A DNA stretch of 64,000 nucleotides from Styela clava. Its lineage: Eukaryota. The notes beneath the pieces were generated by a model. The model was not told the DNA's origin. It did not search any database and worked only from the letters and a program-made list of their open reading frames with translations. Shown one piece after another: positions 14,326 to 63,195 of this stretch; the first letter of the stretch is position 1; every line of letters starts with the position of its first letter. The translations under genes were made by a program, and so were the position numbers. Location: NCBI RefSeq assembly GCF_964204865.1, contig NC_135254.1, forward strand, positions 19,468,001-19,532,000, written 5' to 3'.

Positions 14326-17038
14326 ATGAATATCAGAACATTGTTAGTGACTTTGATTGTGTCAGTAATTACGGTATCTGGGGATGAAACAGATACCAAG
14401 AAAGTGTGGTGTGTGGATGATACTGTGATGCAAAACACTGATCTTGTCAAAGGCATTGATAGAGATGATTTGTGCAAATCAAGTATAAGTAAGTGCTTCC
14501 CTTTTTATTGTATTGTTTCTTATGATGGAAGTGCATGTCATCTAAGGTAGCAGTTCCTTTACAGCGATTACAATCAATAGTACATTGTGATAATTTATAA
14601 CTAGTTTAATCCATAAGCAAAATATGTTTTGTAATAATGCTTATTTTTTTCAAAATGTGCTACCAATCACTGATCTCGGCTAAATGAATATAAATTAAGG
14701 ATAAGGCTAACCATGTATGTCATATATACTGTTAGTTTTACTCAACTTTTTTCATATGTTCAGTAAATGCCACACCATGGTCAGATGAGGAGGATAAAAC
14801 ACCAGCTAAACCAGAAAATCTCCAACTTCAAGCCCGCACTTATAAAACTGATGATGAAAACTCATCAAGGCAAATAGCTGTGTTTATATCATGGAGACAG
14901 AAAAGTAAGAAATTCTTTTCAGCCCTACTTTTATTTGTTTTCAAATTTACACTGGTCAGCCATTGTTTTGTCATTGAGTGGATGCTCTTTCAGTAAAGAT
15001 AAGTTCATTGCACTGTGACAAATTATCACTGTTGAGTTCAAAAATATGAATTTCCACAGTGGGTGACCTGCCTTCCTCACAAAGTTACTATGTTGAATTG
15101 AATTTTATCAATCCTCCTGGTCAACACAAGCAATATACAATGACATGGGATAATGCTCTGTTGAGGGAACTGGAGAATAGTACAGCACATTATGTAAGTT
15201 TTTTTAAAATTAAATATCAGGAATTAGTCTAGGGTTTCATATTTACCATGGGGAAAATAAAAGGCAGAGCAAACTGTAACTGATGATCAAAGGAAATTTT
15301 TGTATTTTAAAATTATAGGTGAAAAAATATATTTTTATACAAACAGGTTGAATTCAATTTTATCTACTGCAGCAGAATTGAAGGAAGCTACCATATTGGG
15401 CCCGGTGATAAATACCGGTTCAAGATACAAGGTTTACCCATGTATCAAGAAGACTCAGATCCCCAACTTGTCGCTGGGAATATAGCAATACCAGGTACAA
15501 AAAAATACGAAACTACACTTCCACAAGAAGTCCGTCAAACTTTTGATATTTAATTATTATTTACACTTTCAGGTTGTAGAAAAAGCAAGGAAATTCGAAG
15601 ATCTGCAGCTTGCCGCAGTCATACAAGAAGAAAGAAACGTCCAAAACCTAGTATTATTATTATTGTTTATTACTATTGATGAGAATGAAATCCTTTGAAT
15701 CAAAATAAATAAATGTACCGTACATAAAAAATAGAATAATGGACGATGGAAACTGATGCGTATCTGCAATACAATGCAAATCCATTAATTCTGATGATTT
15801 GTTTACAGTAAAGCCTATCAATGAACCAGCTGAAACTATCGATAAAGAAGAACAACCGTCTACTGAATCTGCAAAGAATATGAATGAAGCACAAAATCGC
15901 TCAGGTATTCAAAGAGTAGTGCTGGAAATAAATTCCTGATAAAGAAATTAATGTTTAATCGAAAAATAATTTACTTGCAGGAGATGATCCAGAAATAGCT
16001 GATTTTACCTCAACAAATATTGTTTTCATTATTGTTGGAGCGGTTATCATCGGCGTATTGATTATGGCATTATTATTCATTTTATGTCGTAAGAGGTTGC
16101 ATGGATGTAAGTTATTTTGTAATACTTCTAAGCCTTTTCATGTTTTGTGCATGACTCGCAAGTCACAATCACAACTTACCATATTTCTTATCTATTATTT
16201 AGATATTCTTCCGAAGAAAAGCGTCGCAAAACGACGTGTTCTAATAATCAGCAGTTTAGAAGAAAAATATTCGCAAGCTATTAACATGCTTTTAAAGATT
16301 TTTGACAAGATTGAAAGCATCAAACTAACATGTAATCTACGACAGAAAATTGACATAGGAGAGCATGGAATTGTAAAATGGGTGACAAAAAATGTTACTG
16401 ATGCTGATATTGTAGTTTTTGTCATAGGCAATAAAAGTGAAGTTGCAAAGGATCACTGTTCTGAAAACTCCCCATTAGAAGTAGAAGAAATTGAGAAACA
16501 TCAAGTTGGGCAATCACTCAATACAGCAGAAACCATCATCAATTCGAATAAGTGCGTAAATTCGCACAAAAAATTTATAGTACTCGACCTACATCATCAT
16601 GTTAAGAGGGAAGATTTGCCGATTTTCAAGCACTATAGATTGCTATCGGATTTCAAAAAATTCACCCATCATGTTATTGGAGCATCACATATCATGAGCA
16701 CTAGTGATAAGAAGATTTTCAGTAATCTACTCTCAAATGCACAGCTGGGATATGGAACAAAAATTACAACCGCGGAAATAGATGAAGATGACGTTATTGA
16801 TCCAAAAAATGCTCCCATTTCTGGCCAAAATAATTTTGATTCTCTACCATTCCCACCTGCAAATATTGAAGAAGGACAATCCCTGGCATTGAATATTGAT
16901 GATACTTCAGCATATGTTGATGGACCTCCATCGTGTGAAAGTAATCAGTCTCACGAGTATGTAACAACTGATTATAACAATCCAGGACAATCTTACAGAT
17001 ACCTCAAGGCAGGCGCTAGACCAAAAACAAAATGCTGA
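14326..17038 (+). CDS. IL-17 receptor-like gene A (signal peptide, single FnIII, stalk, TM, SEFIR, tail)
   Basis: Exons 14326-14488 (signal), 14764-14904 (PWSDEEDKTPAKPENLQLQ...IAVFISWRQK), 15060-15193, 15347-15494 (VEFNF...PGDKYRFKIQGLPMY...IAIP), 15573-15650 (GCRKSKEIRRSAAC), 15809-15904, 15981-16106 (TM IVFIIVGAVIIGVLIMALLFIL), 16203-17038 (RRVLIISS...IGEHGIVKW...ADIVVFV, SEFIR-like). Confidence 0.88.
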
Positions 17039-17656
17039 CATTGATAATAATACAACCAAGTCTATATAAAATGTTGGGCACTAGAATCTGACAAGGGCAT
17101 CCTTATATTTAAATGAGCTAGGAATGGAGTTGGATCTGAACGCTGGCAAAATGTCTCGCATATCATACCATTATGCAATAAACACACTTGAAAGCCATTG
17201 ATTTTTAAAATCATTTATTCAGCTTCCTATGATTTGTTCTTCCTATTGCCTGATACTGAACATTCGGTTACTTTACTTATTACTTGGGTTTATAATAATA
17301 TTTTCATGTGATTCTATGTACACTCTGCCACACGAATAATAGCTGATGCAGTTTTTATTTGTCTTTCTATGTATATTACCCTTATCAAAATAAACACCAT
17401 ATTGTTTTTTATTATTATGCTAAAGTGTGCAGAATATTTTCGTTAATGTCCATAGACAGCATCTTATTTTTGGGACATTTAAAACTACTGCTCACATTAT
17501 AAACTTTTGTGCAATTTTTTCTATGATATAGATCAGCTAAATGAATATCATGCGATGAATAAAGAGATCGAGATCCTAAAACCGCATTGCGAGCGCGGAA
17601 AGTTTTTATTAATAGGTACAAATTTTATTTCTCTGGGAATGACCATTACTATAGAC

Positions 17657-21639: not shown

Positions 21640-24600
21640 ATGCAGAACTATGGGTTAGCTTTATGTTTGTTTCTGATATTACTTGTTTGCTGGAGTAAAG
21701 TGGTTGATGGTAAACATATTGAATGCAGGCGAAAGAAGTCAGAAAATTCAAAGTATTTAAATAAAAGAAAATGTTACTGTTATAATGGTAATAATTTTGT
21801 ACGAATCTAATACTACTTGATATCAGGGCTGTGGAGTTGAAGAAAATTTGCGCTAATCTCGATTCCAACTACAATAACTGCAAAAGTTGTTTATTGGAAA
21901 TGCTTGGTCAATTCAAATTCTGAATCATGACTACAATATCAATAAAAATATGCAAAACTAAGACACCAATTTCACAGCCTTAGGTAATATTCTTTAGATT
22001 ATATCTGCACGTTCACGATCAAGATATTCTCTTTAAAGATAGAACAATGGCTTTTTGAAATTAATATGTTGGAACTAGGTGGGTACGAACTTGGATTCTC
22101 AACCAAGAAACAACGTGCCCTGTTGATACATTGTTGCGTCACAATAACCTTTCAATTTTGTCATTCTCTTGAAATTTTAGAATGTCCACTACTGAAGGGC
22201 TTTTGCTTGTAAACAGTACTCGCCCCTCACTTGAATTCCGGGAGAATTCTTGCTAACATACAGAACCAGCAAATCCCATAGCGCGCTGATGCTGCTTAAT
22301 TTGAAAATGTCAAGCAAGATAATAAGATATTCGTTCGCTGAGGGAAATATTATTTTGACCAGTAGAATTGCCATTATTGCCGATTATTCAAACTCTAAAT
22401 ATCATGCACAATCTATTAATAGTTTTTTTTATACATAGTTACAGGTCCTGGGTGGAGTAAGAAAGAAGTTAAACCAGCCCCAGCAGTTTACAATCTTTCA
22501 CTAGTTCAGACTGCCTATAATATCTCAAAGGGTGAAACTCGAATTGGTGTTGATATTACTTGGACACAAAAGAGTAAGTTTATGTCAACACCCATAGCCA
22601 AGTATTCAAGCCAAATACTTATGTATTTTGAAATAAATTACGAACAACCTACTAAATTGATATATTTTGCATCAAATAAAGCAAAATCTAGAACAAAATG
22701 CTTTTCTTTGAGGGTCACTGATCCATTCGTTTGACTTTTATAATCATTATGTTAAATTTTTCCTCTCTGCAATTGAATGTAAATAAAATAAAATGTTTTT
22801 GTATTGTTAGCTTTTAATTTTTTGATATTACAGGTTCTGATATTGAATATATAGACCCAGGATACTTCATTGAAGTTGTAGACAGAAGCAGCAATGAGGA
22901 TTGGCAATATAAATGTCCTATAAAAGTTAACAATTCAAAAACCGAAATGGTAAGAAATGTGCCTTATTATTAGTGATACAGGATTACAGGGTAACCCTCA
23001 AAAAACACAACCGATAATTAATTCCTTCTATGAACATGAAAAAAATATATTCGGAACTTCTGCTTGTGTATGATTGTACCCAAAAAAATATGTGGATGGA
23101 ACTTAAATATTCAAAATAAAGAAATGTAAATATCCCCAAACTAAGGCGGGCAGAATCAAATCTAACAAATATTTTTATTGTTGCTTAGTTTCACGCCCCC
23201 TCAAAAAATTGTCTACGCCTCCACCGTTAGAGAACCGCTATACTAGAATATGACCAAATAACCTGGGTTCTGTTTTGGTTGGTCATCCGGTATCTGTCTT
23301 ACACATACCAAAGTTTACACTAAAACGCAATGATATCTAAAAAGAGCAGTCCTTTTTTTGTGCGAAATTGTTTTATGAAACGGAATTGCTCATAGATAAA
23401 TATACTAGCATAAAATGGTTAAACCTACCGGTATGTGGAAATCACACTATGACTTAATCTTCTGTCATTAACAAGCGTTTAATATCTCAGCTATGACCCT
23501 AATTCTTGAAAATTGCTTATATTTTTTAGGTGACGTTTCGCTACACTTTTAAAACTATTCAACACCGTGATGAAATAGTACCAGGAAAAACTTTCTACAT
23601 AAAAATATTTGGACTTCCAATGTACAATAAAGATGACACGCCATCATCTGTTAAAGGCGAAATAAAAATACAAAGTACGCTAACGCTTGAAAGAGACTAT
23701 GATTTCTAATTTTGGTATATATTTTAAAGCATGAAATACAAAAAGCATGGGTGTTTTTTTTTAATCTGCCTCCAGTATGCCAGAAACGATATTACCCACA
23801 AATAACTTTTCCATTGTTTAAACCAATGATTCTGTAGATTATATTTAAACTACGCAGCAGATGCTTTCAGCAATAATAACCAGTGAGAGTTTCACCTTAC
23901 CACATAGATGTATGATCATTTTGCTTATTATTTACTACAGAATGTGGAAATACTCAATCCCGTATTCGTGATAAGAAGAAAAAAAATGACCAAAAAAACA
24001 AGCGAATAAAAGGTTAGCTTAATTTTCAATAAATAATATTTACCGTATATAGTCTCCCACTTCTTAAATGACTTAATATTATTTTTTAGGTTCAAATTTG
24101 CGCCCAAGGGATGAAAATAATGTAAAGAATAAAAATAAAGGTATATAAAGAAAAATATTATATTAGCTGAAACCGATTGTTATTTGAATTTATTCTTCAG
24201 AGATATCGTACCATTCGAAAATACAATACTTGTTTTTTAGTAACTCAACTTAATTTTCAGTTCAAAACAAATAGCCTGCTTCTGCCTAAATTATTTTTAT
24301 TTTTTTAGATTCAAATTTACGCCCAAAGACTCCATCCAAAATAAAGAATAATAAAGGTATAGTGATGTCCTATTTACTAAAACAGAACGAAATTGATTGT
24401 TATCTGAATTAATTTTATTACAGATAACGTTCCATTCGAACATACAATACTAGTTGCTGTATTCGCCACCGTAGCAGTGATCTCAGTTATTGCCATCATT
24501 GTTTATAAAACTTCACAAAGTAAGTGGGATCTATTTCTGAATAATACCATTATGCGTATCTAAATTGCTACTTAATATGGTAAAGTGTGTGAAAACAGAG

Positions 24601-25748
24601 GTTCAGGAGCACCGTGAAAACTAGTGTCAATGCGTTATTGCTGCAAACAGATAAATATATATCAACCTGATATCGTGGTACTTAAGCTCTGAACAAGGCC
24701 CTATATAAGCAACCACTGATATATCATGACACGTAAGAGGTTACTTTACTTTTCAGTTAAGAAATGTCTACCCAATTTATTACACTCTGGGTAAGATGAA
24801 GAGCAAGAAATTTTAACCAAGATTTGTAAACTGCAATACTAAATTTTTAACCGGTACTACGCTAGTGATTCTCATTTGGATGTTTATGTTCCATCCACTT
24901 ATTTTCAACATGATTTTTGAATAAAACATACTTTCGCCTCATTAGCTTACTAGTTGGTGAGGCGCGAGAACCACTGTGCTAGGCCATCGCTCCACGCGAT
25001 TTGTGTAAAAATGATAATATTCTGGAAATTCCTTACAGGGGAAAGAGAGAAACTACCAAAAGAAGTTCGACATATTTTAGTAATCGGAGATTACATTGAA
25101 AGATACACACCGGTGATCAATCGATTAATTGAAATTTTCAGAGAAGATAACGTTGAAATTCATTCAAATATACGACAAGTTTCAGAAGTGGGACAAAATG
25201 GTATCATAACATGGACGACAGAAGCACTGGAAAAAGTGGATGTTGCAATATTTGTTGTAAACAGCTTGTCACAACTTAGAAACGAAGATGTAACAGTAAT
25301 TGAACAAAACGGAAAAGATCAATACTCTCCTGTTAAAATAGCTATTAGAATCGCAGAAAACATTGCACTGAAAAAAGGTTTCAAAAACTCCAGAAAGAAA
25401 TTCATAGTTGTAGATTTGAACAAATGCATCGTCGAAAATCCCTTAGTAATGTGTGAAGTTTACAACCTGGAAAAAGACTTCAAAAGAATGCTGAAACATG
25501 CACTCGGACCTAATTATAAGGATGAAAATATAAAGCAAAAGAAAGAGACGTTAGCTAAGTTAATTTCCGCAAGTCGAAAACCAAGATCAACCAGACCAAA
25601 AGAAAGATCTCTTCAACCGGTGATTGATTTTGAAAAGTCAAACAATCTTGATGAATCCATTCCACACGAGTGTGAACAAATACCACTGAATTCTTTAAAT
25701 ATACAACAAGATCAGCCACCGTCTGTAGAATGTAACGTATGTAGGTAG
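21640..25748 (+). CDS. IL-17 receptor-like gene C
   Basis: Exons 21640-21709 (MQNYGLALCLFLILLVCWSKVVD, signal), 22445-22573 (GWSKKEVKPAPAV...IGVDITWTQK), 22834-22949, 23530-23674 (VTFRY...PGKTFYIKIFGLPMY), 23941-24012, 24090-24140, 24309-24356, 24424-24519 (TM), 25039-25748 (RHILVIG...VGQNGIITW...VDVAIFV). Confidence 0.85.
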
Positions 25749-29005: not shown

Positions 29006-32000
29006 ATGAAGTTGTTGAAAAAGAAAAGATTGATATATATAGTATTTATAAGCCTAATCGCAAGTTTTTGTGATGCGTACATAACCTGTAGCGAAGAGAT
29101 TGGTGAACTGTGCAAGAAGAAAGATGTACATAACGGTAAGTCTGTGTTGTAGCTGAAAGATGCTCGTTAATATAGAAAACCCTCTAATTGTAGTTGGAAT
29201 TTCTCAGCATTCCGTCTTTTATATCATGGTGGTAAAATGTTTATTAGAAAAGGTCTGACCATGATTGGGAAAAAATGTTATGTGGACTTTTATATATGAT
29301 GCAAACTTTGTTTTCCTTCAAACAGTATCTAAAGGAAGCTTAACACATACTCAATACGCTTAATTGTAATGTTTTTATGTCACTTTAAAAAATAATTTGT
29401 TCCATCTGAGTAACGTATATTATATAGTGGGTCACCAACTTTTGGCGGTTACAATAAATGCATATTGAACCATGATAATGAATTCTGTCATCTGTCATTT
29501 TCAAATTTCAATCATGCAGCTACAGCTTCCGCAACCTGTCTCCTCTGCAGGTTATTAATGGCAAAACAACAAGCATGTTCTTGAAGCATACCAATTACGG
29601 TACATCACCAATCTTCTGGTTTATATTGATTATGTTGTTTCTATACTTTCAACAGATGAAATACCATACAGTAAAGTTGGAGAAATGACAGCACCAACTC
29701 CAGAATGCATGACTGTAACCTTACTTGATCAAAATGGCTCAGAACATTTGACAAAAATAACTTGGATGCAAAAGTGTATGTATCCAACTTTTATATGTAT
29801 GTGTAAACTATTGTCATTCAATGAACCCCGTCCTTAACGGTTTTTATGAAGTTTGCTAATTTCAGAAAAGTCGAAATTTTAGAAAATTTTCAGAAGACCA
29901 CTAAGAACCCTTTAATTAATACAAAGTTAAAATTCAAGATTGCGATGGTTGCGATTTCAATGGTACACTTTCACATAATTCGGAAATTAAAATATTTTTG
30001 ATATTTCATTTGTAATGTTTGACTTTGACTATAATCAAAATATATGTACAGGGAATGACTTGCAGTATGTTGATGGATACTATATGTCGATACTTAACAG
30101 TGCTTTTATGGATTTTACAACCGCTCAATACCTTTTTCAAATCAATAAAACCGAACTAGAAAAATATAAAGATGAGAGTGGATACGTGAGTGAAATTTTG
30201 AGACATTGCTACGATATAAAGGAGAATACTATGAGAAAAAAAAACATAGCAATATAAAAATATACAATAATGAGCAGGTTATTGTTATTTTTTATAGAAG
30301 TTGCTCATAAAAAATATCAAAGCACCACATTTATTTTTGTATAGACAATTTTATGATGCTATCGTTATGACAGATGCAAAGGCACTTGTTTCCTCTATCT
30401 TTAAACCTCAGTAAAAAATAAATTGATTTTAATAATTATAATCTTTGTTCAATATTAAATGGTACGTCTGAAAATTTCAGCATTTTGTTTGAACCATCTA
30501 TTCCAGATATTTTTGCAAATATTCTGTCCAACTTATGTCACAGGGTTCCCCATTATTAGATAGTTTCAATCAAAATCTGTAATATATATTATTGTGTAAT
30601 TTACTTTTTGGTTACCCCTTTCTTCTAATTGATATATATTAGGTTACATTCAGTTTCAATGACCACAAAGAACTGTCAGGAAAAATTGCCATCATTATCT
30701 CATCAATGCCAATGTATCAAACTGATGATAATGACCATTTTCTTAAAGTTAATATGGATGGTTAGTTTATTTATTTAATTCACTTTATTGTATATAAAGA
30801 TGAATAAATATTTTTTAAGTAATTTATAATTATACAATTAGCCATTTATAAGCAACTCATAACAGAGTTGTATTCACTCATATTAAAACAATAAGCTCAA
30901 TCTATCATTAAATTATAAAGATAACTTATATATAAGAATTGCTATTTATATTTCTCTTTGAACAACTTGACAAGCGCAAATTATGCATGAAAAGAAATAT
31001 AAACATTTTACATCATTGTTTTATTTCTCACTAATCCTTGCAAATTAAACACAAAATTCCAATGAACATTTTGGAATTTGCATCACCATACATGCCGCCA
31101 TTATCAATTATAGTTTTACTGATAAACCTTTATGTTTTGATCGTTTTTCAGCCATTTATTCAGATCCATATATCACAAAGACAGAAACTATTTGTTTAAA
31201 CAACCAAACAGGTAAAGAATTAATTCTAAAAATATTGATGCCAATTCATGAATATCTCACATTTTCATTTTCAAAAGTAACTTGATAAATGTTTAAATAT
31301 TATCACAACTTTTATATCAGATAACAGTGAAGCCATAAACACTCATATGAAACATAGATATGAAATTGCACAGAGTGCCCTGATGCGATAGTTAAAGCCC
31401 ATTGTTGCTACAGATAATGAAGGATCAGAATATGGAAGTGAAATGCTCGGTATAGATTCTCAAGAATATGATATTGGTAGCAGCGAAAATTTCCCAACTG
31501 ATCCTGATGACGTAGAAGTGTCAAGAGATTCACCACTTTGTGACACTACTGGAAGTGAGTGATATTTAAAACAAGGTTGTAATAATTTAACGAGTCAGTT
31601 ATTGACTTATTCCCAACTCAAATCACTTGGTAGAGTGACTTGGAAGGAATTTTTCTCCACTCATATTGTTTTTTCGAATAACCTCTGACATCAAGTTAAT
31701 AACTTGAGATAATGATAACACCTAACACTAAGATCGCAACAGTACAAATAGTGAAACGGCCGAAGATTGTAAAATTGTAAAGATGTATAGTTTCACTACA
31801 TTGGGTATTGTAATAATCAAAAGTGAATAATGCAAAAAAACATGTATCGAATTTCAAATATGAACAGTAGTGTAGAAACATGATTTATTGCCATATATCA
31901 TTTCAAGCCTAATAATTTTACTGCTTTTTTACAGCATTAATTAAGATTATTGAATCTCTCTGTTTTGCAGTGGTACCTGTAAGTGTTACAATAATAGCAT

Positions 32001-33883: not shown

Positions 33884-33951
33884 CATTCTTGACTGTTTTT
33901 GCATATAATAATAGACACATTCTTGACTGTTTTTGCATATAATAATAGACA
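33884..33951. repeat. 34-bp perfect tandem duplication
   Basis: CATTCTTGACTGTTTTTGCATATAATAATAGACA x2. Confidence 0.85.
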
Positions 33952-47700: not shown

Positions 47701-48180
47701 TTGGATGAAATACATTCAATGATTGCGCGACTGAGGCATGAGTTCAATTTACAAATAGCAAGTAACTGGGAAAACAGAGTAATAATTGGTAAAGATTGGA
47801 TGGATTGGTATCAACAAGCCATGAGCAATTCCAATACTATTCTGTTTATAGTAAGCTATAAAATTTTTTGCGATAGTCTTACTTTGACTAAAACATTGCA
47901 TTCCGGGCAAGAAATCAAACAGGCATTCAATCAAGCACATTCTTGCAAGATACAAGGAAGAGCAGAAGTTATCATTCTTCTTACTGGTAAAGTGAACAGA
48001 ATTCGGATGTTGTTAGCGAGACAAAAAACACATTATGTAGTATACAGCATGCAGAACCACTACAAAGATTTTTTGCTGCATATGACGGGCAAAACAGCAT
48101 CAAAAGACAAAATAAAATATTTGATGAGTGCTATTAAAAACTGTGATCAAAGGAATGAAGAAGCAGACACATTAGTATAA
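41790..48180 (+). CDS. IL-17 receptor-like gene F (short cytoplasmic tail)
   Basis: Exons 41790-41943 (signal), 42337-42461 (PWPKDEDKTA...IALDITWSQK), 44334-44451 (NIEGYYL), 44837-44984 (VNFGYQC...PGDYIEVKLHSLPMY...ITIP), 45203-45280, 45639-45695, 46079-46120, 46638-46748 (TM), 47654-48180 (RRILVIAD...IASNWEN...SNTILFIVS). Confidence 0.85.
43392..44077. mobile_element. pogo/Tigger-like non-autonomous element in gene F intron 2
   Basis: Imperfect TIRs CCATATATTCTCATATATAAGCCGA / TCAGATTATATGCAAGAATATACGG followed by TA; subterminal TATAAGCCGA repeats. Confidence 0.65.
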
Positions 48181-49990: not shown

Positions 49991-52900
49991 ATGAAGGAAA
50001 TCTCATTATGTGTCGTCCTTGCTATATCTGCACTGACAGAGAATGTCCATGCCAGGAAACACTCAGTCAGATGTTTGGATGAGATTGATTCTGAAGACAT
50101 GCAACCAAACATAACGGATGGAGGTTTGCCTTGCACCGCAGAACTATGTGAGTACAAGTTATTATTTACTGCAGAAAAATACTGTACAAGATCCAAACTA
50201 AGTTTAGAATCATCCCACAAAATATACCTACTCAAAATATAATTAAATCAAGTCTCAGGTATTTTAAATCCAGTTTCGTTCTAATTGTCATTTGATATAA
50301 AATAGGTGCAAGAAAAATTTGTGATAACAGATTGAAATTTTTGATGTGTGACAAAAAAATATCTGAAAACTAAATTAAATATTTATTGGAACAACGATAC
50401 GAGTATAAAATAATAAAGATTATTGATAATAAAGATGAAAGTAACAACAATTATGTATCAGTAACAGTTCGTTTGAACAAATTACTGTGGGTTCTATGAG
50501 TTTCTTTTTTGCGTACGATGATGTCATCAAAAACTGCACACCTTGTGGCGGTTCCGCTTTCGCTTTAGTCGTGAAAATTGCTGTACTGGTAGTCTACTGT
50601 GACAGATTGCATACTACTACTTTGTTCTGGCCTTCTGCCTAGGGTGTTCGAGCACTGAATTTTTGTTCGAGTACCGCAGCATTTTTGACTAGAATTTTTT
50701 TGTCGACTACCAACTTTTAAGAGTAACGAGTCGTTCGACTACTGAGGTATCACAGTATATTCTTTGGATGTTTTTATACGAGAATTGGGTCATGGTAACA
50801 ATAAGTACATTTAACATTGTGCATTGCAAGCTATTGAAAATGTAACAAAATTGTTCATGTAAGCCTGATGTCAATAATTGCATTACATTTTATGTGGGCT
50901 ACAAAGAACTGTTTTTAAACATTGAAAAATGTTAATACTTTTTACCTAATGTAGTCACAAAAATGGCTTATAAATCTCAAAGTATGCTATATATCTAAGT
51001 AGTGTGGTTTCTGTATGGCGAAAAATAAATCACGGATTCCTGAATCATTTTTTTGTTTTTTCGTACACATTTTATTCTTCTTTTATTCGAATAACATATG
51101 TAAAGATTTTGTGAGCTTGACAGTTGTCTAATATGACCTTCAATATGTTGTATAAATCTTTTTTTTATCGCTAGCTGAGGATTTGTTTGAGGGTTATTAC
51201 AAATTCAATCTATTTTTAAGTGACCAATTTTAAAAGAATAGAATTATAAGATTCATCTTACCGATTTAAAGTGAAACAGATGTTTTGTTTTACCAATGCC
51301 AAATTTGTTGCGCAAAATGACTATTTCCAATCAAAATTTGTCACTTTCTGTAAATGTCCTCTTCCCCCTATTGTTTCTTTCAAAAAGGTTTTCATAAAAT
51401 TCACTTGTTTCACTATCAAGTGATTGTTTCACTACAGCATGAACATATTTTTGACTTCATCCTATCATCTCCATATTTTGAGGGGAAGACATTACCACTG
51501 TGATTACGCAATCCAATAGACAAATTCCAATGCACAGTATATACGTCACATTTGAGAATTTACGTAACCTTTCCACAGACGAAATATATTCTCTCACGTA
51601 CCAAATTTCACTTTCGTCTAAAAACAAGCAATCTCTTCCTATTTATCCCAAAATATTTGTTTGAATGTATTATTGTCGGATCCAATCTCGAAATTCATAT
51701 TTTCACACATTTCGGTTTCACAAAAATTGAGGAAATCTGATATTTTCTGTTTAGGGTGTCCACCTCAATGGAATAGAACACAGAAAATTCCACCGAAGCC
51801 ACGATTACATAAGCTTCGTTATTACACCTATAAAATTAATGGTAAAAATCAGCGCAATATTGGCCTGAGAATCAAATGGTCAAATACAGGTAAGAAACAA
51901 ATTCCTCACTATCAACTATTCTAATAATTACTAGAGTTCGACTGTTGATAATAATGCATTTACAAAACTATTTTGAAGAGCAGAATTCCTCTATTACCCA
52001 TGGTAAATAGAGACCCATTTCCTATATTGCTTAATTTTTCTTATATTACATTTTGTACTCTTTCCACTGGAAGCAAGGCTTTGTTCAAGAATCCACTGCT
52101 AGGTAGGAAAATACTTTAGTTTGAAAGGACTGCAGGCGCTCCGGAAGTATTTGTACCAAGATGACGTACAACCTGAACAACTCTAACATGGTAAGCATAC
52201 TATGTTCAGGTTGTGCACCATCCTGGTACAAATACTTTTGAGAGCACCAGGACTGCATCTGCCAGTTTCCGCATTGCCTACACAATTTATTGCACCACGG
52301 ACAAGGTGGTGGGCGTGAGCATCAAACCCACTCTCTATAAAATGGCGAAAAACTTATTTTTTTCATTTTCGGTAGCTGCCCCTTACTGTCCCAAAATGAA
52401 TTTAATTCTAATATATTTCAACTGATTGCATACATATGATTGGTGTGGTAGGAACTTACAGTCCTTCTAATTTGGTATTTATAAATATCCATCTTGTGAA
52501 GGTTTGTTTAGGACCAAGGGCAGCGTGGTATATGGTCACTCAAAAGGAGCCATAAATTTCTAATTATTCCTACAAAAATGAAGGAAATTTATTCAGCACT
52601 TGTGTTTGTGTATGGCTGTACCCAAATGTTTCAGTAATCTAGGACGCTTTGCAAAAAGTCAGGCCCTCTCCTTTTTGTTAGATCATTGTGAACAGCTATT
52701 TTATTTACAAGAGAAAGAGAGAGAGAAAAACATGTTTTAACATTTTGCAGCATCGCATTATCAAAATTACATCAAAGGATATTCTTTGGCAATGTTTAGC
52801 ATTAATATGATGTATGACTTTCGAATATGCTTCAAGACTACAAATGTGAAAAGCCAAATGGAAAGTAATGAGGTATGGTAAAGGATAGTGCATTTTGATA

Positions 52901-55900
52901 GATTATTTTATTTGATAGAAATAGGTTTGTTATATAAATGGCTTAGCAGTGTTTAATCACTTTCATTATTTTTTTTAACTCTGGTCAATAGAAGTGAGAC
53001 CTTACTATCTCTAAAAAGATGTAAACTTGATATTTTCATCATCATAGTTTATTGTTGTTAAAATATTCAAGAAACAATGAAAGCCACAATACTATAAAAA
53101 GACTTCACAAATCACGAGAAAAATTTATTATGCATTTTTGAATGTTGATCTGCTAATTACAAGAATTAACGCTAGCAGAGACTTAATGTCAAACTCATGA
53201 AATTGTTACATACATGGTAATGTATGAGATACATCTCACACTAACAATATCATGTTTTCAAGAAAGATTAAATCAACATCTCTATTTTATTACAATATTC
53301 TAATACATTATGAAGAGTAGTAATATGACATTCCAAGATTCTTGACATTACAATTAAGATTGAGTAATTTGCAACGTAATTTCAAATTTTCAAAGCACTC
53401 CTGTGTGCAGAAATCAGTGCAATGTTAAGTAAGTTTTTAATTCAATGTATCATAAAAGTAATAAAATTTGAGATAGGATAGGAATTCCATATCCATCCGA
53501 GTGGAGAGGAAAGTCGATTATTTGGCTTAATCATATGAAAAACCATGGCTTTTCGTTTGGTTACCAGTCTAAGTCAAGTGTGGGAATAGCAAACAAATTA
53601 TTTATTCGAGATTGATGTTACGTAAACCGCCTACGATGGTGAGAAATCCAACAATGCTCTGTAATTATTCTCCACAGGATTCCAACTTGCGAACCCATGC
53701 AGGGTGATCAGAGATGCGATGGCAATCTTATTGCCTCTCGCTTAGCACGATGCGTCAATTGCTCTTAATGTAGCTTCGCATCAACTGTTACATATCTTCA
53801 CCTGCTAAGTTTTACCTCATTTCTATAACTATAAGATTGGAAATTGTTGATCATTTTGATATCTTGAATCTTGAAATTCCCAACAACAAAATGAAACCAA
53901 CATCTGAATGAAACTTGTTGTTTTTATGTTTTAGATTGAATTTTTATACTGGTACAAATGTAAGGATGAAGGGTGTGTTCAAATTCTACCAGGAAAGACA
54001 TATTTTCTTGAGTTAGCTCCAAATCCTATGAGTGTATATAAAGAAAATGAGGACGGGATGCATGGCAGACGAAAAATCACCATACCAGGTATGTTAATTA
54101 TATTATCAAACAACCTTCAAACATGCCTTTCACTCTGAACAAGGTGCTATGCAAGCGGCCAATGATATCTAAAGTTATGTTTGGAGCTACTATCATTTAG
54201 GATCGGAATCTTTCATATTTGGGGTTAGGTGGAGGGACCAGAGGGATTTGTGCCAGAGATGTGTAACCTGCAATGTCAACACAGTTACGATAAGTCTAAT
54301 GCTTTAACTACTAGGCCATCGAGCCTTTCTTATAAATATATCTTGAAAGAACCCCATACGTTTTGACCAAATAAAAGTTTGATTTTTTAACCAAAGCATA
54401 TTCCATTGAAATAATACACAAAGATTTATTATTTATCAATTTAGGTTGTGATAATGAAAGAATAAGAAAATATCAAGGATGTCCTGGCAATGGTGAGTAT
54501 TGTATTTCGCAATTTTAAATTTCCGACGACATCAAGCAAAAGATAAGATAAATTGCATTCTTTATCAAGGTGCTTTTGAACGGTAGAAAAAACATTAGAA
54601 ACTCAAAACATTTCTCAAACACATAAGTGCATATTATTGATCTATTATTGGATTTAGACATCAGTTAAGATAGGATGGCAATAGACAAAGCGTGTAAAGC
54701 TATATATTCCAACTATTCAAAGTTGTTCATCAAACAGAGGCAGTGAGAATTGAGTACTAAACGATAACACCCAAACCATTTTTTTACGAAAGTCTAATGA
54801 TAGGAATAAATTTTAAATAATCCTTGACTTTTATTTATATCCTACGATCCCACAGAAAAAAACAGAAGGAAAAAGGCTAGACAGAACAATATTGAAATGG
54901 CCTCTGATGAAAGCACAATTTTGACAGCTGTGCTAGATCCAGGTACAAATGATCTTGTTATGTTTCGAAACCATGCTACCATGCAAATTTCAGTTTTATC
55001 GCTAGACCTGGCTTCTAATCTGCTTTTCGATTCATCTTACATATGAGAAGAGTTGAATGAGAAGTTCTTTAAATCTCTCTGCGACAGGGAGAAGTACAGC
55101 AATTATTTTACATACAACCCACCCATTTGAAAATGTGAATCTTATTCATTTGTCCAGCCAATTGTACAATTCGTACAGCTTTAATGCCCTATGAAGTGTC
55201 GATTACCTTGGTACAATGATTCATTTTTTTTACCAATTAATAAATTATATATAAATTCTAGAGACAATATATTCAGGAGATGGCGAAGAAGATACTTTCA
55301 GTTATACAACCACAAAAAAAAAGCACAAAGGTGACCTAAATATAAAAATTTTATATTTCTGAAGCAGTTTCATACCCCATACAACCTCCGGAGGAGGAAT
55401 GAGGTCAAGTGTAAACCGAATTTTCATTAAGTACTATATGGTATTAGGAAAAAAACTCAATTTCAAATTGGTCATAATATTTTATTTACAATATTGCACA
55501 TTAATAACAAAATATTGTACATATTATGCATAAGTATATTGTATAGGAAAAATTGGTGTAGTGTTGGGCTTATGAAAAAAAGTACACGATATGATAATCT
55601 CTGATTAATGAGAACTGACCTAAGAAACCATTGCAGATTTGGCAAAATGTCAGATAATGAGGAAGTTTACAGTACTTTTGTAAGTATTGTCAAGTGTAAA
55701 GAAATTTCAGTAACCATGCTTCAGAAAGCCTTTTTTTGCTTCAAGTATCTCCTAAATAGAAATCTGCCAAACAGAAACTTTTTTCAGTAATTATTATTGC
55801 TAAAAATTTTAGCTGCATAACTAAAGAATGAAAATCACTAATGATAAGTATACAATAATATAAATACGGTAATTAGATTTTCATCAATATAAAAAACAAT

Positions 55901-57643
55901 ATGATATAAATATGTTCCACACCACCAAGTGAGTTTGCTTTTTCCAGTATTCACTGGAATTTCTTCACAAAATGTTCAGGGCTTGATGCCAGACTTTGAG
56001 CAAACTTAGTATAGAATAGGATTTACATATTTGTCCTGGGAGAGAGAATAACCGATAAAACACCTTAATCATATGGTGAAACGCAGCCTCTCGTCCGGTT
56101 ACCAGTCCATGTCGGGTATGAGAATAGTTAGCCAGTTATTTGTTTCGAATATGTGGACTTAATGGTGGAGAAAACGTAAACCACCCTCCGTAAACTTGCA
56201 TTTAAAATATCAAAAACATTTTAGGATTAAGGTTCGAACATATTTATATTGTAGGGATATCGATGCAGTGATGCAACCAATGGGATCTAACAACTTTACA
56301 GGTACAGACATTAACAAAAGCTATCAAGTTGTCACATTGGTATTGACCTTGAGTGCACTAGCAATTTTCTTGATGTTTATATTGTGGATTGCAGTGAAGA
56401 GATGCAATTCAAAAACAGGTAATCACCACTAAAGGATCAGATATATCAACAAATATATCTTCAGATTGTTCATACCAGGGTACTCCCGTAGTGTGCGTGT
56501 ACCAGGTTAGAGTTAGGCCATAATTAGATTCCGATTTTGGCCCATGGGTTTCAGTTCCTTTACACAACTTGATGTAAAGTTGGCGAACAAAATTAGTTAC
56601 CTCCATATTGGTACACACGCTACTGGAGTGCCCATACCAGTGTGGTAATGTCTTGTCTGTCTATTTACACAGTGACAATTGTCACAGAACCAGACAATGA
56701 CATGAAGAATAAAGTGTTTCCATGTTTATTGAATAAGTGATTATATGAAATAAAAGCTGGAAAAGTATGGAACTTGAACTAAAAATTTCCCAGTTTGACA
56801 TGGTTTACTCGATTTTTATACCTTGATATGTTGGGCAATCCAAGTATCAGAAAAACAATTCGCCAAATAACTTCTGATAATGATAATAATTTCTGACTAA
56901 CTACTAACTACAAATTAGTACTTTAATAAGAATAATCACAATGTTTCATATGTCTAATACTTTTTACGTTTTTCTACTTTGTTTAAGTACAAACAAATCA
57001 GAAGGAAGTTCTTTTTCTTGAAAAGACAAACAACATGAATTCACTGCACTCACTGGCATCACAGTGGCTTGTCTCAGAAATCAAATCACAAGGTCATGTC
57101 AAAGTAACATACAGCAAATGGGAAATGCTACAACTTGTAGAAAGTCCTATGCTATGGATGAATGATAAAATAGGAAAAGCTGATATCATTGTTCTTCTTT
57201 TTGCTTCAACTGACACTCAGACATTGCCTAAATCGTTCAGAGTCTTGAATGATAAACCAAGTTCAAGCAAAAATATGGATAATTGGCTAGAAAAAAAATT
57301 CTATGAAATATCCGCTGCAAAACATCAAAAAAGAAAGTTCTATCAGGCATCGTTTTCTGACAACAACAACATCTCTTACCAGACTGCAACAATGAAAACA
57401 TATTATTTGATGGAAGATTTAAAAGAGTTCTATACTGCTATCTGTGGAGGTCAAGAATATTCCTTAATCCTGGACAAGACCCATAAATTGTACAAGTTGA
57501 GTGAAACTATAAAAAAATCTCAAAATCATGTCATTCACAATGAAGATAGCGGGATACCCAACTTTACAGATCTAAAAAATGAAAGTAGCCTGATACAAAA
57601 TAATGGAAGTGGAGCAAGAAGAAAAACAATTACAATCAAATGA
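49991..57643 (+). CDS. IL-17 receptor-like gene G
   Basis: Exons 49991-50148 (signal), 51756-51889 (PPKP...IGLRIKWSNT), 52751-52872 (NYIKGYSL...RICFK), 53935-54088 (IEFLY...PGKTYFLELAPNPM...ITIP), 54445-54492 (GCDNERIRKYQGC), 54856-54942, 55277-55330, 56255-56418 (TM), 56988-57643 (KEVLFL...PMLWMNDKIGKADIIVLLF). Confidence 0.86.
53473..53760 (-). mobile_element. tRNA-derived SINE, same family
   Basis: On the - strand TGACGCATCGTGCTAAGCG...GGGTTCGCAAGTTGGAATCC, (CCTAT)n tail, shared GGTTACCAGTC core. Confidence 0.7.
56012..56190 (-). mobile_element. SINE 3' fragment, same family
   Basis: ATAGAATAGGATTTACATATTT...CCTCTCGTCCGGTTACCAGTCC...TAGTTAGCCAGTTATTTGTTT, shared with the 37243 copy. Confidence 0.65.
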
Positions 57644-59518: not shown

Positions 59519-62500
59519 ATGGAGCAATATTTCAATACAAGATTATTAGGTTGCATTTGCATATTGCTTCATTTCATACTGTCTACCGTCAAAGCTGAGA
59601 ATATACATCATGAGCATTGTCTTCAATGGTGCATGACAAAGTATAATGTTAAGTGTTCTGAAATAGTGGAATGTGAAGCTCATTATAGTAAGTATTCTTT
59701 TAACTGAAACTAGTTTGTAGTTTCCCAAAGAACTGTTTCATTGATATTTGAATGAAAGCTAATAAGTTTGTCTGCTTTCAGCTACCAAAATGTGGTTTCT
59801 AATAACGTAACATGAAATCAGTCTATGTAATGAATAGTAAATCAGGTCCTGGTATAGTGACTAAATAGTTTTTTGATATTCATTTCAATAAATATTTATT
59901 AAAAGTGAAGATCCCAACATCAGTAGACAGATGGCAAGTGCATTAAAAATATACATGGTGTTAATGAAGTTCTAATTTTTTTTTAAATTGCAAAATGAAT
60001 TCATTGACGGAATATGAAGTTTGTTTGTCTTTATAGGCTTATGAAATTAAGTAAAATATTTAAATAAACACTGACTGAAATTAAACACACATGGTTAAGA
60101 TATATTGAGAAATGGTCTTCATAACAAAATTATAATTGCAACGGGACATCATCAAAAACCTGTTTATGGATGCCCACTGTATATGATAAAATAATTCAAA
60201 GTTTTTGTGATGCAAATGTATACTTGTGACCAGAGCAGAATATTGAAAAGGAGTACAAACAGGGATGCCAAAACAAACTGAATTGTATTTGATATATCGT
60301 AAATAATCTTTTGTTATGTGAATAATAAAGATATCTCTTCATTGAAAAAAATGAGACTTAAAGCCATGGAATCGGTATCTGGTAGGCCCATAAAATCATA
60401 TCTTGAATAAACTTTTAATATCTATAATTTTTTTATATCAATCTTAATATGCATATATTACCGGTAAGTATCATTATATTGTCTTTGAATAGAGCTGAAT
60501 TAAAAATATAATAGAATTGTATATTTACTAACAATAATTAATAATAAATTATTTTGTTTAATCCATTTCTGATATCAATGTTTATAATTGGTGTCCTATT
60601 TTACAGATGAAATAATATTAAAAGAAATAGGGGAGCCTCGTCCCATCGCAAATTACCTTAAGGTCACACCTTATTGCTATGAGCATGACAACAGCAATTA
60701 CAGCCATATTGGTTTGAAAATTTCATGGGAGATTAATGGTAGGTGCAGTAAAAGTATAAGTAATGCAATTCTGATTAGTCATATTATTACACCCGTAGTA
60801 TATGTAACAGGCTTAGTGTTAGGCTTTATTAACACTATTCCGATTTTCCTCAATCTTTCCGCTTAAACTGAGAATATTTTAGTTCTATTACGAGTTCGGG
60901 GACTGTCTGTGTTAGGCAAGTGAATATACCCAAGTACTTCTGGAGCGCCAGCATATGAGTAAATCCACGATTTCAGTTTAAAATATATGAACCTTATAAC
61001 AGACCTAACATTGATTATAAAAGAATCAGAAAATGTAATTGATGTTTTGATTCAATTATCAATTAAGACTTGATGGAATCGCTGTCCTAACCTAATTATA
61101 ATTTTATACAAAATCAAGTTTTTCCTTCCACTATGCAGGTCAGTATATGAGAGATGAGTTGGTGACCGAATTTCATCTGGAAATTCAAGAGTTTGGTGGG
61201 CATAGCACAGTATCCAACTTCAATGTTCGCATCACTCCGAACATGTCAATACCCTTCAACAACTACGTGAGTTACAGTATATAATGGTATAGAAAAGTAT
61301 ATAATCTATAACATTATGAATTTTGTTCAATAAGAATTGTTGAGAGTATTTTTAATATGGCGTAAATATACGTCATTTGCTCTGAACAAAGATCAGTAAA
61401 AGCAGCAACTGGTAGGTGATGGGATACTAAAGTTTGGAAGAACCAGAATTTTTCAGATTCTGCATTGCTTACTCAATTTACTACACTCCGAGTGAGGTGG
61501 TAGGCATGAGACATGAACCTGAGATTGTACCCTGCAATGTCAGCATATTGAAATAGAGATTTTTTTCTTTCAATCATGTGTCATGACATTGATTTAAAGC
61601 AATGAAGCTGCATAAAAAAAATAAAAAAGTGCTGGCTGGATTATCTACTATGAAATCCCTTTTATGAGACAACTTACATTTAACACTAAACAAAGCCTTA
61701 AGGGGGGCAAACATAATTGGCTTATTTATATTCTCACTTATGGCAACTTTTTTGGATTTCTTCCTTACGTGTTGTCTCATGTACTTTAATTTTTTGTACC
61801 ATGGCGGAGTTTTAAGTAAATGCAAACAGCAGTATTTATATTATTTTCAAGATTCATTTTGAGTATTTCTATCTTGGATGGGACAGTGATAATGTGCCAG
61901 AAATATCAGAGAACGTCAACTATACTGTGGAGCTTGATTCATTGCCACTTTTGGTAGAAAAGAAAAATTCGGAAATGAATATCACTCCTCAAACAATTAC
62001 AAGGGAATTTAAAATACCAGGTAACACAACATTAATATTTTGATATTCGAACGAACTATAAGATTTTGTACAGCTTCACGATTGATGTAACAAATTTTCA
62101 GTCCGGGAAACAGATTTTTTTAAAATGGTATCAACCTGATGCTATCATCATTTGAGCGGGATATGGAAATAACATTAGATGAATCAAATTTGGGCTGAAA
62201 ACTGCAAACGAAATCATGTTCAAGAGTCGAGACATTATTTTAAGTCATGAATTTTGTAAAACAGTCGTACTTTACTGAAGATGGTGAACTTCTTGATTAA
62301 TATTTTTTAACTTTTATGCTCATTTCACGACTCCAACTAACAACATATACTGGTTCCAAAGTTCATCAAGTTTGAGTCAGGTTAAATCTTGTTAATTTCA
62401 AAAATATTGGTCATTTTATGACTCTTTCCAGAGAAATTTTATTTATTATATTTTCAATTCAACAAAACAGATTTTTATTTTATTTTTTGATTTCTCATAG

Positions 62501-63195
62501 CAAATTTTCGTAAAATGAATAACTGCACAGCACCCGATGAATCAAGTAAGTCACATTCTTAATGTTTTAAATATTCACAAAAACTTAATCTGAATGAATA
62601 TGTAAAATATGTTAAAAATGTTCACTACCTACTAGTAATACTTATTCAAAATAAAAATATCACGAGTGAACATTGTTGTTATTACAAACTATATCTTCCT
62701 CCAGCCCACTCAGGAATAAGAATTACTGATTTCCATGCCATATTTATCACATGAACACAGTAATAGCAACTTTAATGCTTGCAATGTAACTGCATTCTTT
62801 ATGTAATATAAAACATGATGTTTGATCATATATGTATGATATAATTTTCCAGTTTGGAATTACATTACATAGATTTTTAGAATACAAGAAATATAGCAAT
62901 CAAGTTGCAGAAGAAATTTTAGTTTCAAAAAGGGAATTTTATTTAAAGATCTATATAAAATAACATAGAAAGATAAAAAATAATGAAAAAAGTAATATTT
63001 ATTATAATTATACTTTCTATTACGTAGTTGAACTAGAAAAGGAAGAAACAACAACAATCTCAACAACAACGACAGAGCAAAATGCTGAAATGTTGACAAT
63101 TGTTGTAACAGTTTCAGTCATCTTTGTGATATTGCTAATCGTCGTAATTGTTGGAATCGTTTCATTTTTGTTTCGAAAGGAGAAAGCAGTCCAAA
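59519..63195 (+). CDS. IL-17 receptor-like gene H, partial (SEFIR exon expected beyond the window)
   Basis: Exons 59519-59687 (signal + 4 Cys), 60607-60738 (IGLKISWEIN), 61139-61266, 61852-62020 (IHFEY...YTVELDSLPL...FKIP), 62501-62545, 63028-63195 (Thr-rich stalk + TM LTIVVTVSVIFVILLIVVIVGIVSFLF). Same exon phases as A-G. Confidence 0.82.

Follow-up and report, generated by a model that had tools for sequence, protein, structure and literature searches.

What kind of proteins are encoded by a run of neighboring genes on chromosome 5 of the tunicate Styela clava, seven of which carry the RefSeq label "uncharacterized protein"? A first-pass annotation of a 64,000-nucleotide window of this chromosome (C5:19468001-19532000), made from the DNA letters, had proposed a tandem array of at least eight strongly diverged IL-17-receptor-like genes with SEFIR domains, sharing one exon layout, running off the window's end and perhaps larger than eight.

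A tandem array of eight genes

We found eight such genes in tandem, head to tail on the + strand, over about 50 kb. Seven of them (genes A to G) are established by RefSeq mapping, shared intron phases, sequence profiles and Pfam matches, and the membership of the eighth, gene H, is partly verified. The array does run off the window, as the SEFIR exon of gene H is located 117-661 bases past its end (L001:117-661), but it is not larger than eight: there are no further family exons in the 10 kb on either side of the window, and a genome-wide profile search found just two relatives beyond the array, both on C1. Within the window, the full-profile scan had no match on the minus strand, an Rfam scan had none, and Pfam searches with ten other open reading frames (ORFs) had none.

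Membership was assessed by leave-one-out profiles, which recovered the SEFIR exon of the left-out gene with E-values from 1e-5 to 2e-30, and the left-out ectodomain exons with E-values from 1e-5 to 9e-14 for genes A, B, C, E and F; these values exclude chance similarity. The ectodomains of B, C and E are tied to the family in this way. The link for the gene D ectodomain is weak, and the ectodomains of G and H were not recognized by sequence from those of their paralogs.

Gene structures and splicing

The RefSeq proteins P0001, P0005, P0004, P0003, P0007/P0063, P0064 and P0060 can be placed on the window with 98-100% identity and introns bounded by GT/AG. Genes A to G have a common layout: a signal-peptide exon, three exons that make up one FnIII-like domain, between one and five small exons for the stalk, one transmembrane (TM) exon and a single long exon for SEFIR. 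All seven share the intron phases 1, 1, 0, 1, followed by 1; the sole exception is an additional phase-2 mini-exon in isoform X1 of gene G. The layout that the first-pass annotation had described, with phases 1-1-0-1, is thus real, and its three FnIII exons form a single domain.

Gene A (LOC120344275, 573 amino acids; P0001, 573/573 identity) has a coding sequence at 14326..17038, in exons 14326-14488, 14764-14904, 15060-15193, 15347-15494, 15573-15650, 15809-15904, 15981-16106 (TM) and 16203-17038 (SEFIR), with phases 1,1,0,1,1,1,1. By Pfam and model alignment, exons 2-4 (14764..15494) encode the FnIII-like domain, corresponding to D1 of IL-17 receptors, and the last exon (16203..17038) encodes the SEFIR domain and a C-terminal GARPK tail. 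Gene B (LOC120344279, 18176..21176) was modeled from RefSeq isoform X3 (P0005) and RNA-like contigs, with exons 18176-18287, 18772-18891, 19174-19292, 19380-19512, 19886-19975, 20153-20267 (TM) and 20512-21176 (SEFIR); its TM exon is present in the contigs and skipped by isoform X3. Gene C (LOC120344277 isoform X2, 466 amino acids; P0004, 456/466 identity) spans 21640..25748, in exons 21640-21787, 22439-22573, 22834-22949, 23530-23674, 24090-24140, 24424-24519 (TM) and 25039-25748 (SEFIR), with phases 1,1,0,1,1,1. It contains an internal duplication. Gene D (LOC120344273, 597 amino acids; P0003, 597/597 identity) spans 29006..33412, in exons 29006-29135, 29656-29775, 30052-30185, 30643-30760, 31152-31211, 31414-31554, 31971-32078 (TM), 32272-32331 and 32490-33412 (SEFIR).

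Gene E (LOC120344276, 523 amino acids; P0007, 516/523 identity) lies at 35117..40609, with exons 35117-35339, 36033-36158, 36959-37071, 37782-37950, 38336-38416, 39281-39373 (TM) and 39843-40609 (SEFIR). The current RefSeq version of its protein, P0063, departs from P0007 at seven residues, and the window has the same seven differences. Gene F (LOC120344280, 453 amino acids; P0064, 453/453 identity) lies at 41790..48180, with exons 41790-41943, 42337-42462, 44334-44452, 44837-44984, 45203-45280, 45639-45695, 46079-46120, 46638-46748 (TM) and 47654-48180 (SEFIR, with a short tail). It stops early, and similarity to the tails of its paralogs continues 3' of the stop. Gene G (LOC120344281 isoform X1, 544 amino acids; P0060, 544/544 identity) lies at 49991..57643, with exons 49991-50147, 51755-51889, 52751-52872, 53935-54088, 54445-54492, 54856-54942, 55262-55330, 55637-55679, 56255-56418 (TM) and 56988-57643 (SEFIR). 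For gene H (59519..64000, running off the window), we found no protein identifier; the hand model, built on consensus splice sites, has a signal exon and three ectodomain exons at 59519-59687, 60607-60738, 61139-61266 and 61852-62020 (phases 1,1,0,1, as in the other genes), followed by a TM exon whose end is at 63195. Searched exon by exon, its ectodomain had no relevant Pfam match, and the profile of genes A to G gave E = 0.77. Its SEFIR exon scores 18.7 bits with Pfam, below the cut-off, and E = 2.7e-4 in the genome-wide profile search.

Transcript support for the predicted junctions was obtained for genes A and B. All seven introns of gene A are spliced at the exact model coordinates, and six junctions of gene B are spliced, in contigs from three studies (runs X1, X5 and X9), which we presume to be RNA on the evidence of GT..AG-bounded deletions that are not seen in DNA. 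None of these introns is spliced out in the DNA run X10, and DNA contigs of an independent run span the 6 kb examined for splicing. The spliced contigs extend the 3'UTR of gene A to about 17547. The junctions of genes C to G are those of the RefSeq models, and those of gene H are from the hand model.

The SEFIR domain and protein topology

The last exons encode SEFIR domains, as the first-pass annotation had predicted. Pfam SEFIR matches six of the seven long ORFs and exceeds its cut-off of 23 bits in A (27.6 bits, residues 308-452), D (37.5 bits) and the SEFIR exon of G (23.9 bits); B, C, F and H, as well as G taken as a whole protein, score below the cut-off. Gene E has no Pfam SEFIR match and is joined to its paralogs by its leave-one-out profile (E = 6e-7); part of the IG..GI motif is missing from it. 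When a profile of seven SEFIR exons was compared to the PDB, only SEFIR chains of IL-17RB were matched (E = 3e-7). Residues 304-484 of the gene A AlphaFold model match the SEFIR domains of IL-17RA (4nux, Z = 14.3) and IL-17RB (3vbc, Z = 11.7), in models whose alignments included vertebrate IL-17RB and IL-17RD and which may be tilted towards that fold.

Proteins A to G have the type I single-pass topology, with a hydrophobic N-terminus and, between D1 and SEFIR, a single strongly hydrophobic stretch (counted for gene B from the RNA-supported model). The Act1/CIKS adaptors are cytosolic proteins that have a C-terminal SEFIR domain but neither ectodomain nor TM helix; the array proteins, which have both as well as a signal peptide, do not belong among them. 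Four of the seven end in a conserved C-terminal tail, G-A-R-[PR]-[KR], and this motif is also conserved across species.

An ectodomain with D1 and no D2

The prediction of FnIII ectodomains held for a single domain. Pfam IL17R_fnIII_D1 matches residues 58-201 of protein A with 27.5 bits (cut-off 26), and gives sub-threshold scores for F (14.5 bits) and G (17.9 bits). The top structural matches of the A and G models are D1 of the IL-17RA and IL-17RB ectodomains (Foldseek E = 3e-9 and 6e-9, the latter for G, whose best match is IL-17RA); again subject to the possible tilt of the models, residues 33-213 of A superpose on residues 37-200 of IL-17RA with Z = 14.7 and an rmsd of 2.9 Å over 158 residues. 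The A model has pLDDT above 90 in both of its domains, and the ectodomain of G is confidently modeled. In genes A to G a short cysteine-containing N-terminal piece follows the signal peptide.

Between the end of D1 and the TM helix there is a charged stalk of 24-106 residues, with pLDDT of 31-46 in the A and G models, i.e. predicted to be disordered. Canonical IL-17 receptors have a second FnIII domain, D2, of roughly 105 residues. The structural match of gene A stops at IL-17RA residue 200, which we assume lies close to where D1 ends, and these stalks leave no room for D2. Pfam D2 has no match in any of the paralogs, and a genome-wide search with IL17R_fnIII_D2 found nothing, but its control was likewise without a match anywhere. 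We conclude that D2 is absent from the array proteins. As the IL-17RA complex structures illustrate, canonical receptors hold their ligand with D1 and D2 jointly, so binding by an ectodomain with D1 alone may be weak or depend on a partner chain, or its ligand may be of another kind. The "double-FN3" feature (PMC11087794) is not present in these proteins.

An old expansion specific to tunicates

The paralogs are as diverged as had been claimed: their identity averages 22% for the ectodomains and 19% for the SEFIR domains. In a phylogenetic tree, all eight fall within a tunicate-only clade (support 98/95) together with sequences from Ciona and Phallusia, so none is orthologous to one particular vertebrate receptor. 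Vertebrate IL-17RB (98/96) and IL-17RD (98/95) form separate clades, and IL-17RA, RC and RE are absent from the profile's matches. Gene H has a very long branch. [quoted passage not shown] Because four of the paralogs have closer relatives that are absent from the S. clava genome, the duplications must be old. The idea of an old lineage-specific expansion therefore stands.

We saw no sign of hyper-polymorphism like that of allorecognition loci: two RefSeq versions of proteins B, C, D and E, a small sample, differ at about 1-2% of residues.

Ligands, candidate adaptors and other receptors in the genome

A count of IL-17 ligands, suggested by the first-pass annotation, gave at least 32 Pfam IL17 exon matches in the S. 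clava genome, all above the cut-off and keeping the conserved cysteines (CxC..GC and GCxC). Two SEFIR ORFs without a TM segment, of 303 and 171 amino acids, are located 2.2 Mb upstream of the array (C5:17.29 Mb) and are candidate Act1-like adaptors. C4 carries one long, multi-domain ORF for a canonical IL-17RD/ILCR1-like receptor. Altogether S. clava has at least 10 short receptors, one long receptor and the candidate adaptors.

Function of the array

The IL-17R-like identity of the array proteins is supported by Pfam, by the profile match to IL-17RB chains and by the predicted folds; the locus may be one for cytokine or immune-recognition receptors, with putative ligand binding and signaling. 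The reading we prefer, with a probability of roughly 0.7, is that these are eight anciently duplicated receptor genes with D1 alone, in which D1 binds IL-17-type ligands and SEFIR recruits Act1-like adaptors. D1 would bind dimeric cystine-knot ligands of the IL-17 type, such as those encoded by the 32 or more exons; ligand-induced pairing of receptors would bring SEFIR domains together, and these would recruit TM-less Act1/CIKS-like adaptors such as those encoded upstream on C5, leading to TRAF/NF-kB-type responses. With paralogs only about 20% identical, the enlarged ligand family would most likely be shared out among the receptors.

It is unlikely, in our estimation, that the array proteins are instead accessory, decoy or modulatory chains that pair with the C4 receptor, damp signaling or bind a non-IL-17 ligand, for example a microbial molecule or a cystine-knot protein resembling neurotrophins. 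Vertebrate IL-17RD/SEF damps signaling in other pathways, and the closest vertebrate match of the SEFIR profile is IL-17RD-like. The loss of D2, the existence of a long multi-domain receptor in the same genome, the TM-skipping RefSeq isoform of gene B and the binding of neurotrophin-type ligands by arthropod IL-17 receptors (PMC11087794) also point this way. However, the SEFIR folds are intact and the tail motif is kept across species, which favors signaling over a pure decoy role; eight diverged copies beside so many ligand exons are better suited to ligand partitioning; and Ciona and Phallusia have the D1-only layout as well, which points to it as the working form of this subfamily in tunicates.

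More improbable still is a partly decaying array in which some members (F and H, possibly also B or E) would be leftovers of the old expansion that no longer function. The early stop of F with tail homology beyond it, the lack of a Pfam SEFIR match and of a complete IG..GI motif in E, the long branch and missing protein record of H, and the internal duplication in C could all be explained by decay. Yet all eight genes have open exons, consensus splice sites and conserved phases, B is transcribed and correctly spliced, the relatives of A, B, D and G are retained in other species, and unconstrained copies so diverged would have gained stops. An artefact of assembly or annotation–haplotypes that were collapsed or duplicated, or ORFs arising by chance–is refuted by the roughly 20% identity among copies, the DNA contigs over 6 kb and the leave-one-out statistics, and there are no N runs within the window; we give it a negligible chance.

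Tentatively, and with more doubt than belief, we suggest that the array receptors belong to an IL-17R subfamily of the tunicates' own that works with a single FnIII domain. In S. clava it would have diversified together with the 32 or more IL-17 ligands into a combinatorial cytokine or recognition system, with the clade-specific C-terminal GARP[KR] tail as a new docking motif. If true, it would amount to an expansion on the receptor side for which the literature we searched has no report in any chordate. IL-17 signaling is a central pathway of mucosal defense, and here its receptor side is expanded in one compact array in a member of the vertebrates' sister group. The build is unusual, since the second ligand-binding domain is lost in all members and the signaling domain is intact. 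If the array receptors do bind IL-17s, then D1 alone can suffice, and they offer a natural panel for studying ligand-receptor specificity.

Comparison with known IL-17 receptor systems

The array genes are not mentioned in the S. clava genome paper (PMC7540406) or in the IL-17 surveys available. Human IL-17RA (3jvf, 4hsa, 7uwm; SEFIR 4nux) has the type I topology and the D1 and SEFIR folds in common with the array proteins, which are only 11-17% identical to it, lack D2 and the long C-terminal extension after SEFIR, total 450-600 amino acids and, forming a separate clade, are not its orthologs. The closest vertebrate sequences to the SEFIR profile are IL-17RB and IL-17RD (a Latimeria IL-17RD-like protein has E = 2e-8). 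IL-17RB resembles the array proteins in its overall length of about 500 amino acids, but has both D1 and D2 (Pfam residues 25-158 and 159-252 of P0030), and IL-17RD has N-terminal and Ig/Fn domains.

Counterparts of similarly short build are Ciona intestinalis LOC100179646 and the Phallusia mammillata homologs of LOC100179646 and LOC100183544, all "uncharacterized" and all in the tunicate clade of the array. They are weakly similar to it (profile scores of 36-45 bits), and with D1 ending near residues 191-202 and SEFIR starting near 272-311 they too have no room for D2. Most animals have two to four IL-17 receptors (PMC11087794). Ligand-side expansions are known in sea urchin, octopus and bivalves: the sea urchin has 35 IL-17 genes and 2 receptors, and the mussel has 3-6 IL-17R forms (PMC8353272, PMC5457136). 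S. clava likewise has the large ligand family of a marine filter feeder or grazer, but its receptor side is enlarged too.

A tandem array of eight IL-17-receptor-family genes

The window (C5:19468001-19532000, in a genome of 377 Mb) is AT-rich, with a GC content of 0.29-0.37, and has no gaps. Its ORF at 15959-17035 matches LOC120344275 (gene A; protein P0001, 573 aa, "uncharacterized protein"), for which the Pfam domains IL17R_fnIII_D1 and SEFIR are recorded, and Pfam SEFIR matches six of the seven plus-strand ORFs longer than 120 aa, scoring above the cut-off in genes A, D and G. We made a SEFIR profile from the last exons of the seven genes A-G and searched it against 1.84 billion representative proteins. 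There were 57 matches in total, and the top ones were seven RefSeq S. clava proteins, every one "uncharacterized", from genes A-G (respectively LOC120344275, LOC120344279, LOC120344277, LOC120344273, LOC120344276, LOC120344280 and LOC120344281). Placed on the window with splice-site-aware refinement, these proteins fit at 98-100% identity, on the plus strand and head to tail, with 0.5-3.3 kb between neighboring genes of the array. Each gene opens with a signal exon and three exons that make up one domain; 1-5 short exons for the stalk come next, and a transmembrane (TM) exon and a long terminal exon complete it. Introns 1-4 have phases 1,1,0,1 in each gene and the remaining introns are in phase 1, the sole exception being a phase-2 mini-exon in isoform X1 of gene G. 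This is exactly the layout and phasing claimed in the first-pass annotation.

By searching the whole genome with the SEFIR profile we found the seven A-G exons, two relatives on chromosome C1 (minus-strand SEFIR exons of the same subfamily, 10 kb apart, at L003:614-1261 and L004:501-1064; C1:14.56-14.57 Mb), and one match lying 167 bases beyond the end of the window. The last of these belongs to an eighth gene, H, whose final exon lies in a 191-codon open frame in the adjoining flank (L001:89-661, acceptor at L001:117). Its upstream exons (59519-59687, 60607-60738, 61139-61266 and 61852-62020) and a TM exon ending at 63195, all on the plus strand, have consensus splice sites and the family phases, and in the model the W of the I.W motif and the "IPG" end are at the expected places. 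Judged from its sequence, H is the least secure member of the array, because its ectodomain exons taken one by one have no significant match to the A-G profile or Pfam and its SEFIR domain is sub-threshold in Pfam (18.7 bits). Profile scans of the 24 kb preceding A and the 10 kb following H turned up no further family exons, which limits the array to eight genes. It does run off the window, as had been proposed, but only by the SEFIR exon of H, and the larger array that had been envisaged is not there. In positions 1-14300 we recognized no gene: there are no long ORFs, Rfam families or receptor-family exons, and the ORFs that we tried have no Pfam match.

As a test against chance, each gene in turn was removed from the profile and then sought with the profile of the others. 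SEFIR exons were recovered at E-values of 1e-5 to 2e-30, and ectodomain exons at 1e-5 to 9e-14 for A, B, C, E and F; the ectodomain of D was recovered weakly (E = 0.005) and that of G had no match in this search. No minus-strand segment scored in the full-profile scan.

Domain identity and a single-FnIII ectodomain

Both domains of gene A score above the curated Pfam cut-offs, with 27.5 for IL17R_fnIII_D1 (cut-off 26; residues 58-201) and 27.6 for SEFIR (cut-off 23). Among all PDB sequences, the seven-exon SEFIR profile hit only IL-17RB SEFIR chains (E = 3e-7 and 3.5e-6). An AlphaFold model of gene A, made from a 41-row alignment, is confident at residues 50-210 and 300-480 and disordered at 226-261 and in the tail. 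Its top Foldseek matches are IL-17RA ectodomains (E = 3e-9), next IL-17RB, and lower down the SEFIR domains of both receptors. By VIA-align, residues 33-213 superpose on IL-17RA 37-200 (Z = 14.7, rmsd 2.9 Å over 158 residues), and residues 304-484 on the IL-17RA SEFIR structure (Z = 14.3). Gene G, the annotated ectodomain least similar to its paralogs, models with the same strand order as A and also has IL-17RA as its top Foldseek match (E = 6e-9, rmsd 2.5-3.7 Å), with the caveat that the alignments for both models included vertebrate IL-17RB and IL-17RD rows. The SEFIR and IL-17R-type ectodomain assignments of the first-pass annotation are thus upheld.

The structural match of gene A ends at IL-17RA residue 200, a position that we place near the end of D1, the first FnIII domain, and its linker. 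In IL-17RB (P0030), Pfam places D1 at 25-158 and the second domain, D2, at 159-252. The distance from the end of D1 to the TM helix in the array proteins is 24 residues in C, 42 in B, 58 in D, 61 in F, 70 in A and 106 in G (isoform X1); in E, where the scripted motif had no match, it is about 30 residues by alignment. K, R, E, D, S and T abound in these stalks, whose pLDDT is 31-46 in the models of A and G. Relatives in Ciona and Phallusia have equal spacing (D1 end near 191-202, SEFIR start near 272-311), so the D1-only build is a trait of the tunicate subfamily and not of Styela alone.

Several features vary among the members. Four array proteins, A (about 17012-17026), D, E and G, carry a G-A-R-[PR]-[KR] motif 5-12 residues before the C-terminus. 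The motif recurs in P0002, P0008, P0009 and P0012, proteins of other species whose identity is otherwise no higher than about 40%, and is missing from the vertebrate IL-17RB and IL-17RD matches. From this distribution in sequences, it is probably a clade-specific docking motif. Gene F has an early stop (region 47654-48440), and behind it the paralog profile continues to align through two more stop codons to position 246 of 251, with a degraded tail motif in the frame behind the stop. Gene C contains a tandem duplication of about 220 bp (24082-24455; 24082-24135 pairs with 24301-24354, and 24201-24234 with 24422-24455; 76-88% identity) that doubles the stalk-plus-TM exon unit, and RefSeq isoform X2 takes its stalk exon from copy 1 and its TM exon from copy 2. 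RefSeq lists at least three isoforms of gene G (544, 514 and 505 aa; exons 55637-55679 and 56255-56418), X1 and X2 differing in a 30-residue stalk piece directly before the TM helix. Other tandem repeats are intergenic (26689-26964, 149 bp x 1.9; 33873-33953, 34 bp x 2.4) or in intron 1 of gene E (35375-35587, 107 bp x 2.0).

Transcripts of genes A and B

Sequencing runs X1, X5 and X9, from three different studies, contain about 45% of the words sampled from 14300-20299, close to the share of exons in that stretch, and runs of a fourth study contain more than 90% and resemble genomic DNA. In X1, X5 and X9 contigs all seven introns of gene A are skipped (joints 14488/14764, 14904/15060, 15193/15347, 15494/15573, 15650/15809, 15904/15981 and 16106/16203), with GT..AG ends throughout, as are five introns of gene B, into whose last exon a loose contig end runs. 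Contigs of the DNA run X10 over 14300-20299 have none of these joints; because the intron-less form is missing from DNA, we take X1, X5 and X9 to be RNA, the run type itself being a guess. The predicted junctions are therefore backed by transcripts from three studies for A and B; C-G stand on RefSeq models and H on the hand-built one.

The exon at 20153-20267, which encodes the TM helix of gene B, is present in spliced contigs of all three studies and is skipped by RefSeq isoform X3 (P0005), which would fuse the ectodomain straight to SEFIR with no membrane anchor. One X5 contig links 17611 to 18157 (GT..AG ends), so gene B has a 5' leader exon just after or within the gene A 3'UTR, which extends to about 17547.

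An old expansion in tunicates

Mean identity between paralogs is 22% in the ectodomain and 19% in SEFIR, in line with the proposed hyper-divergence; the closest pair, B and C, is 36% identical. We inferred a maximum-likelihood tree from 57 SEFIR cores, taking a SEFIR protein from a metagenome as the outgroup. A single clade (98/95) unites the eight array genes with Ciona LOC100179646, a pair of Phallusia proteins and transcript-assembly proteins; vertebrate IL-17RB (98/96) and IL-17RD (98/95) each have a clade of their own. Within the tunicate clade, A, B, D and G are each paired with sequences about 40% identical to them. Searched against the S. clava genome, gene A's partner P0002 has gene A itself as its best match (38%), and profile searches of this genome found no genes like the partners of B, D and G. 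The partners must therefore belong to other species, and duplication took place before those species split off, which bears out the old lineage-specific expansion proposed initially. Neighboring genes tend to be closest in the tree, a pattern expected from local duplication (B with C, E with F). The two C1 genes (14.56 Mb) are nested alongside E and F, bringing the family to at least 10 members. The inner branching order is unsure because of long branches (H, E and Ciona).

Ligands, candidate adaptors and comparison with known receptors

A count of IL-17 ligands, suggested in the first-pass annotation, gave at least 32 exon-level Pfam IL17 matches, every one above the cut-off and mostly in tandem clusters on C3, C5 and C2 (for example, C3:14.84-14.87 Mb, C3:2.18-2.23 Mb, C5:14.72-15.08 Mb and C2:18.35-18.38 Mb). 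For Ciona, three LPS-activated IL-17 genes, and 6-7 genes in a genome-wide count, are reported (PMC8353272). In an alignment of 22 ligand exons the CxC..GC and GCxC cysteines are conserved, and an insert with an extra cysteine pair is present in the C10 copy and in most of the C3 14.8-Mb copies that were aligned. Two adjacent SEFIR ORFs without a TM helix, 2.2 Mb upstream on C5 (303 and 171 aa; L005:154-1065 and L006:530-1045, C5:17.29 Mb), are candidate Act1/CIKS-like adaptors; tunicate CIKS has no Death domain (PMC11087794). On C4 (9.07 Mb; L015:1822-4230, minus strand) an 803-codon single-exon frame specifies a long receptor of IL-17RD/ILCR1-like type, whose ectodomain has several domains (IL17R_D_N, fn3, D1 and ILCR1-Ig matches) and which also has a TM helix and SEFIR (45 bits). 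From these matches, ligands, a canonical receptor and adaptors are all present in this genome. Going by family membership, the array products would bind IL-17s and signal through Act1/CIKS-like adaptors.

Overall, the observation made in the first-pass annotation is confirmed and its interpretation supported: the genes are real members of the IL-17 receptor family, expressed at least in part, that arose by ancient duplication and have a D1-only ectodomain. Neither IL-17 nor SEFIR is mentioned in the S. clava genome paper, we found no description of the locus in the Styela and ascidian IL-17 receptor literature, and one IL-17 survey makes no reference to receptors with a single domain. In canonical IL-17 receptors the FnIII domains come as a pair (PMC11087794), whereas the array proteins lack this double-FN3 arrangement, and they are not orthologs of any vertebrate receptor. 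The array is the largest tandem set of IL-17-receptor-family genes that we could find described for any chordate.
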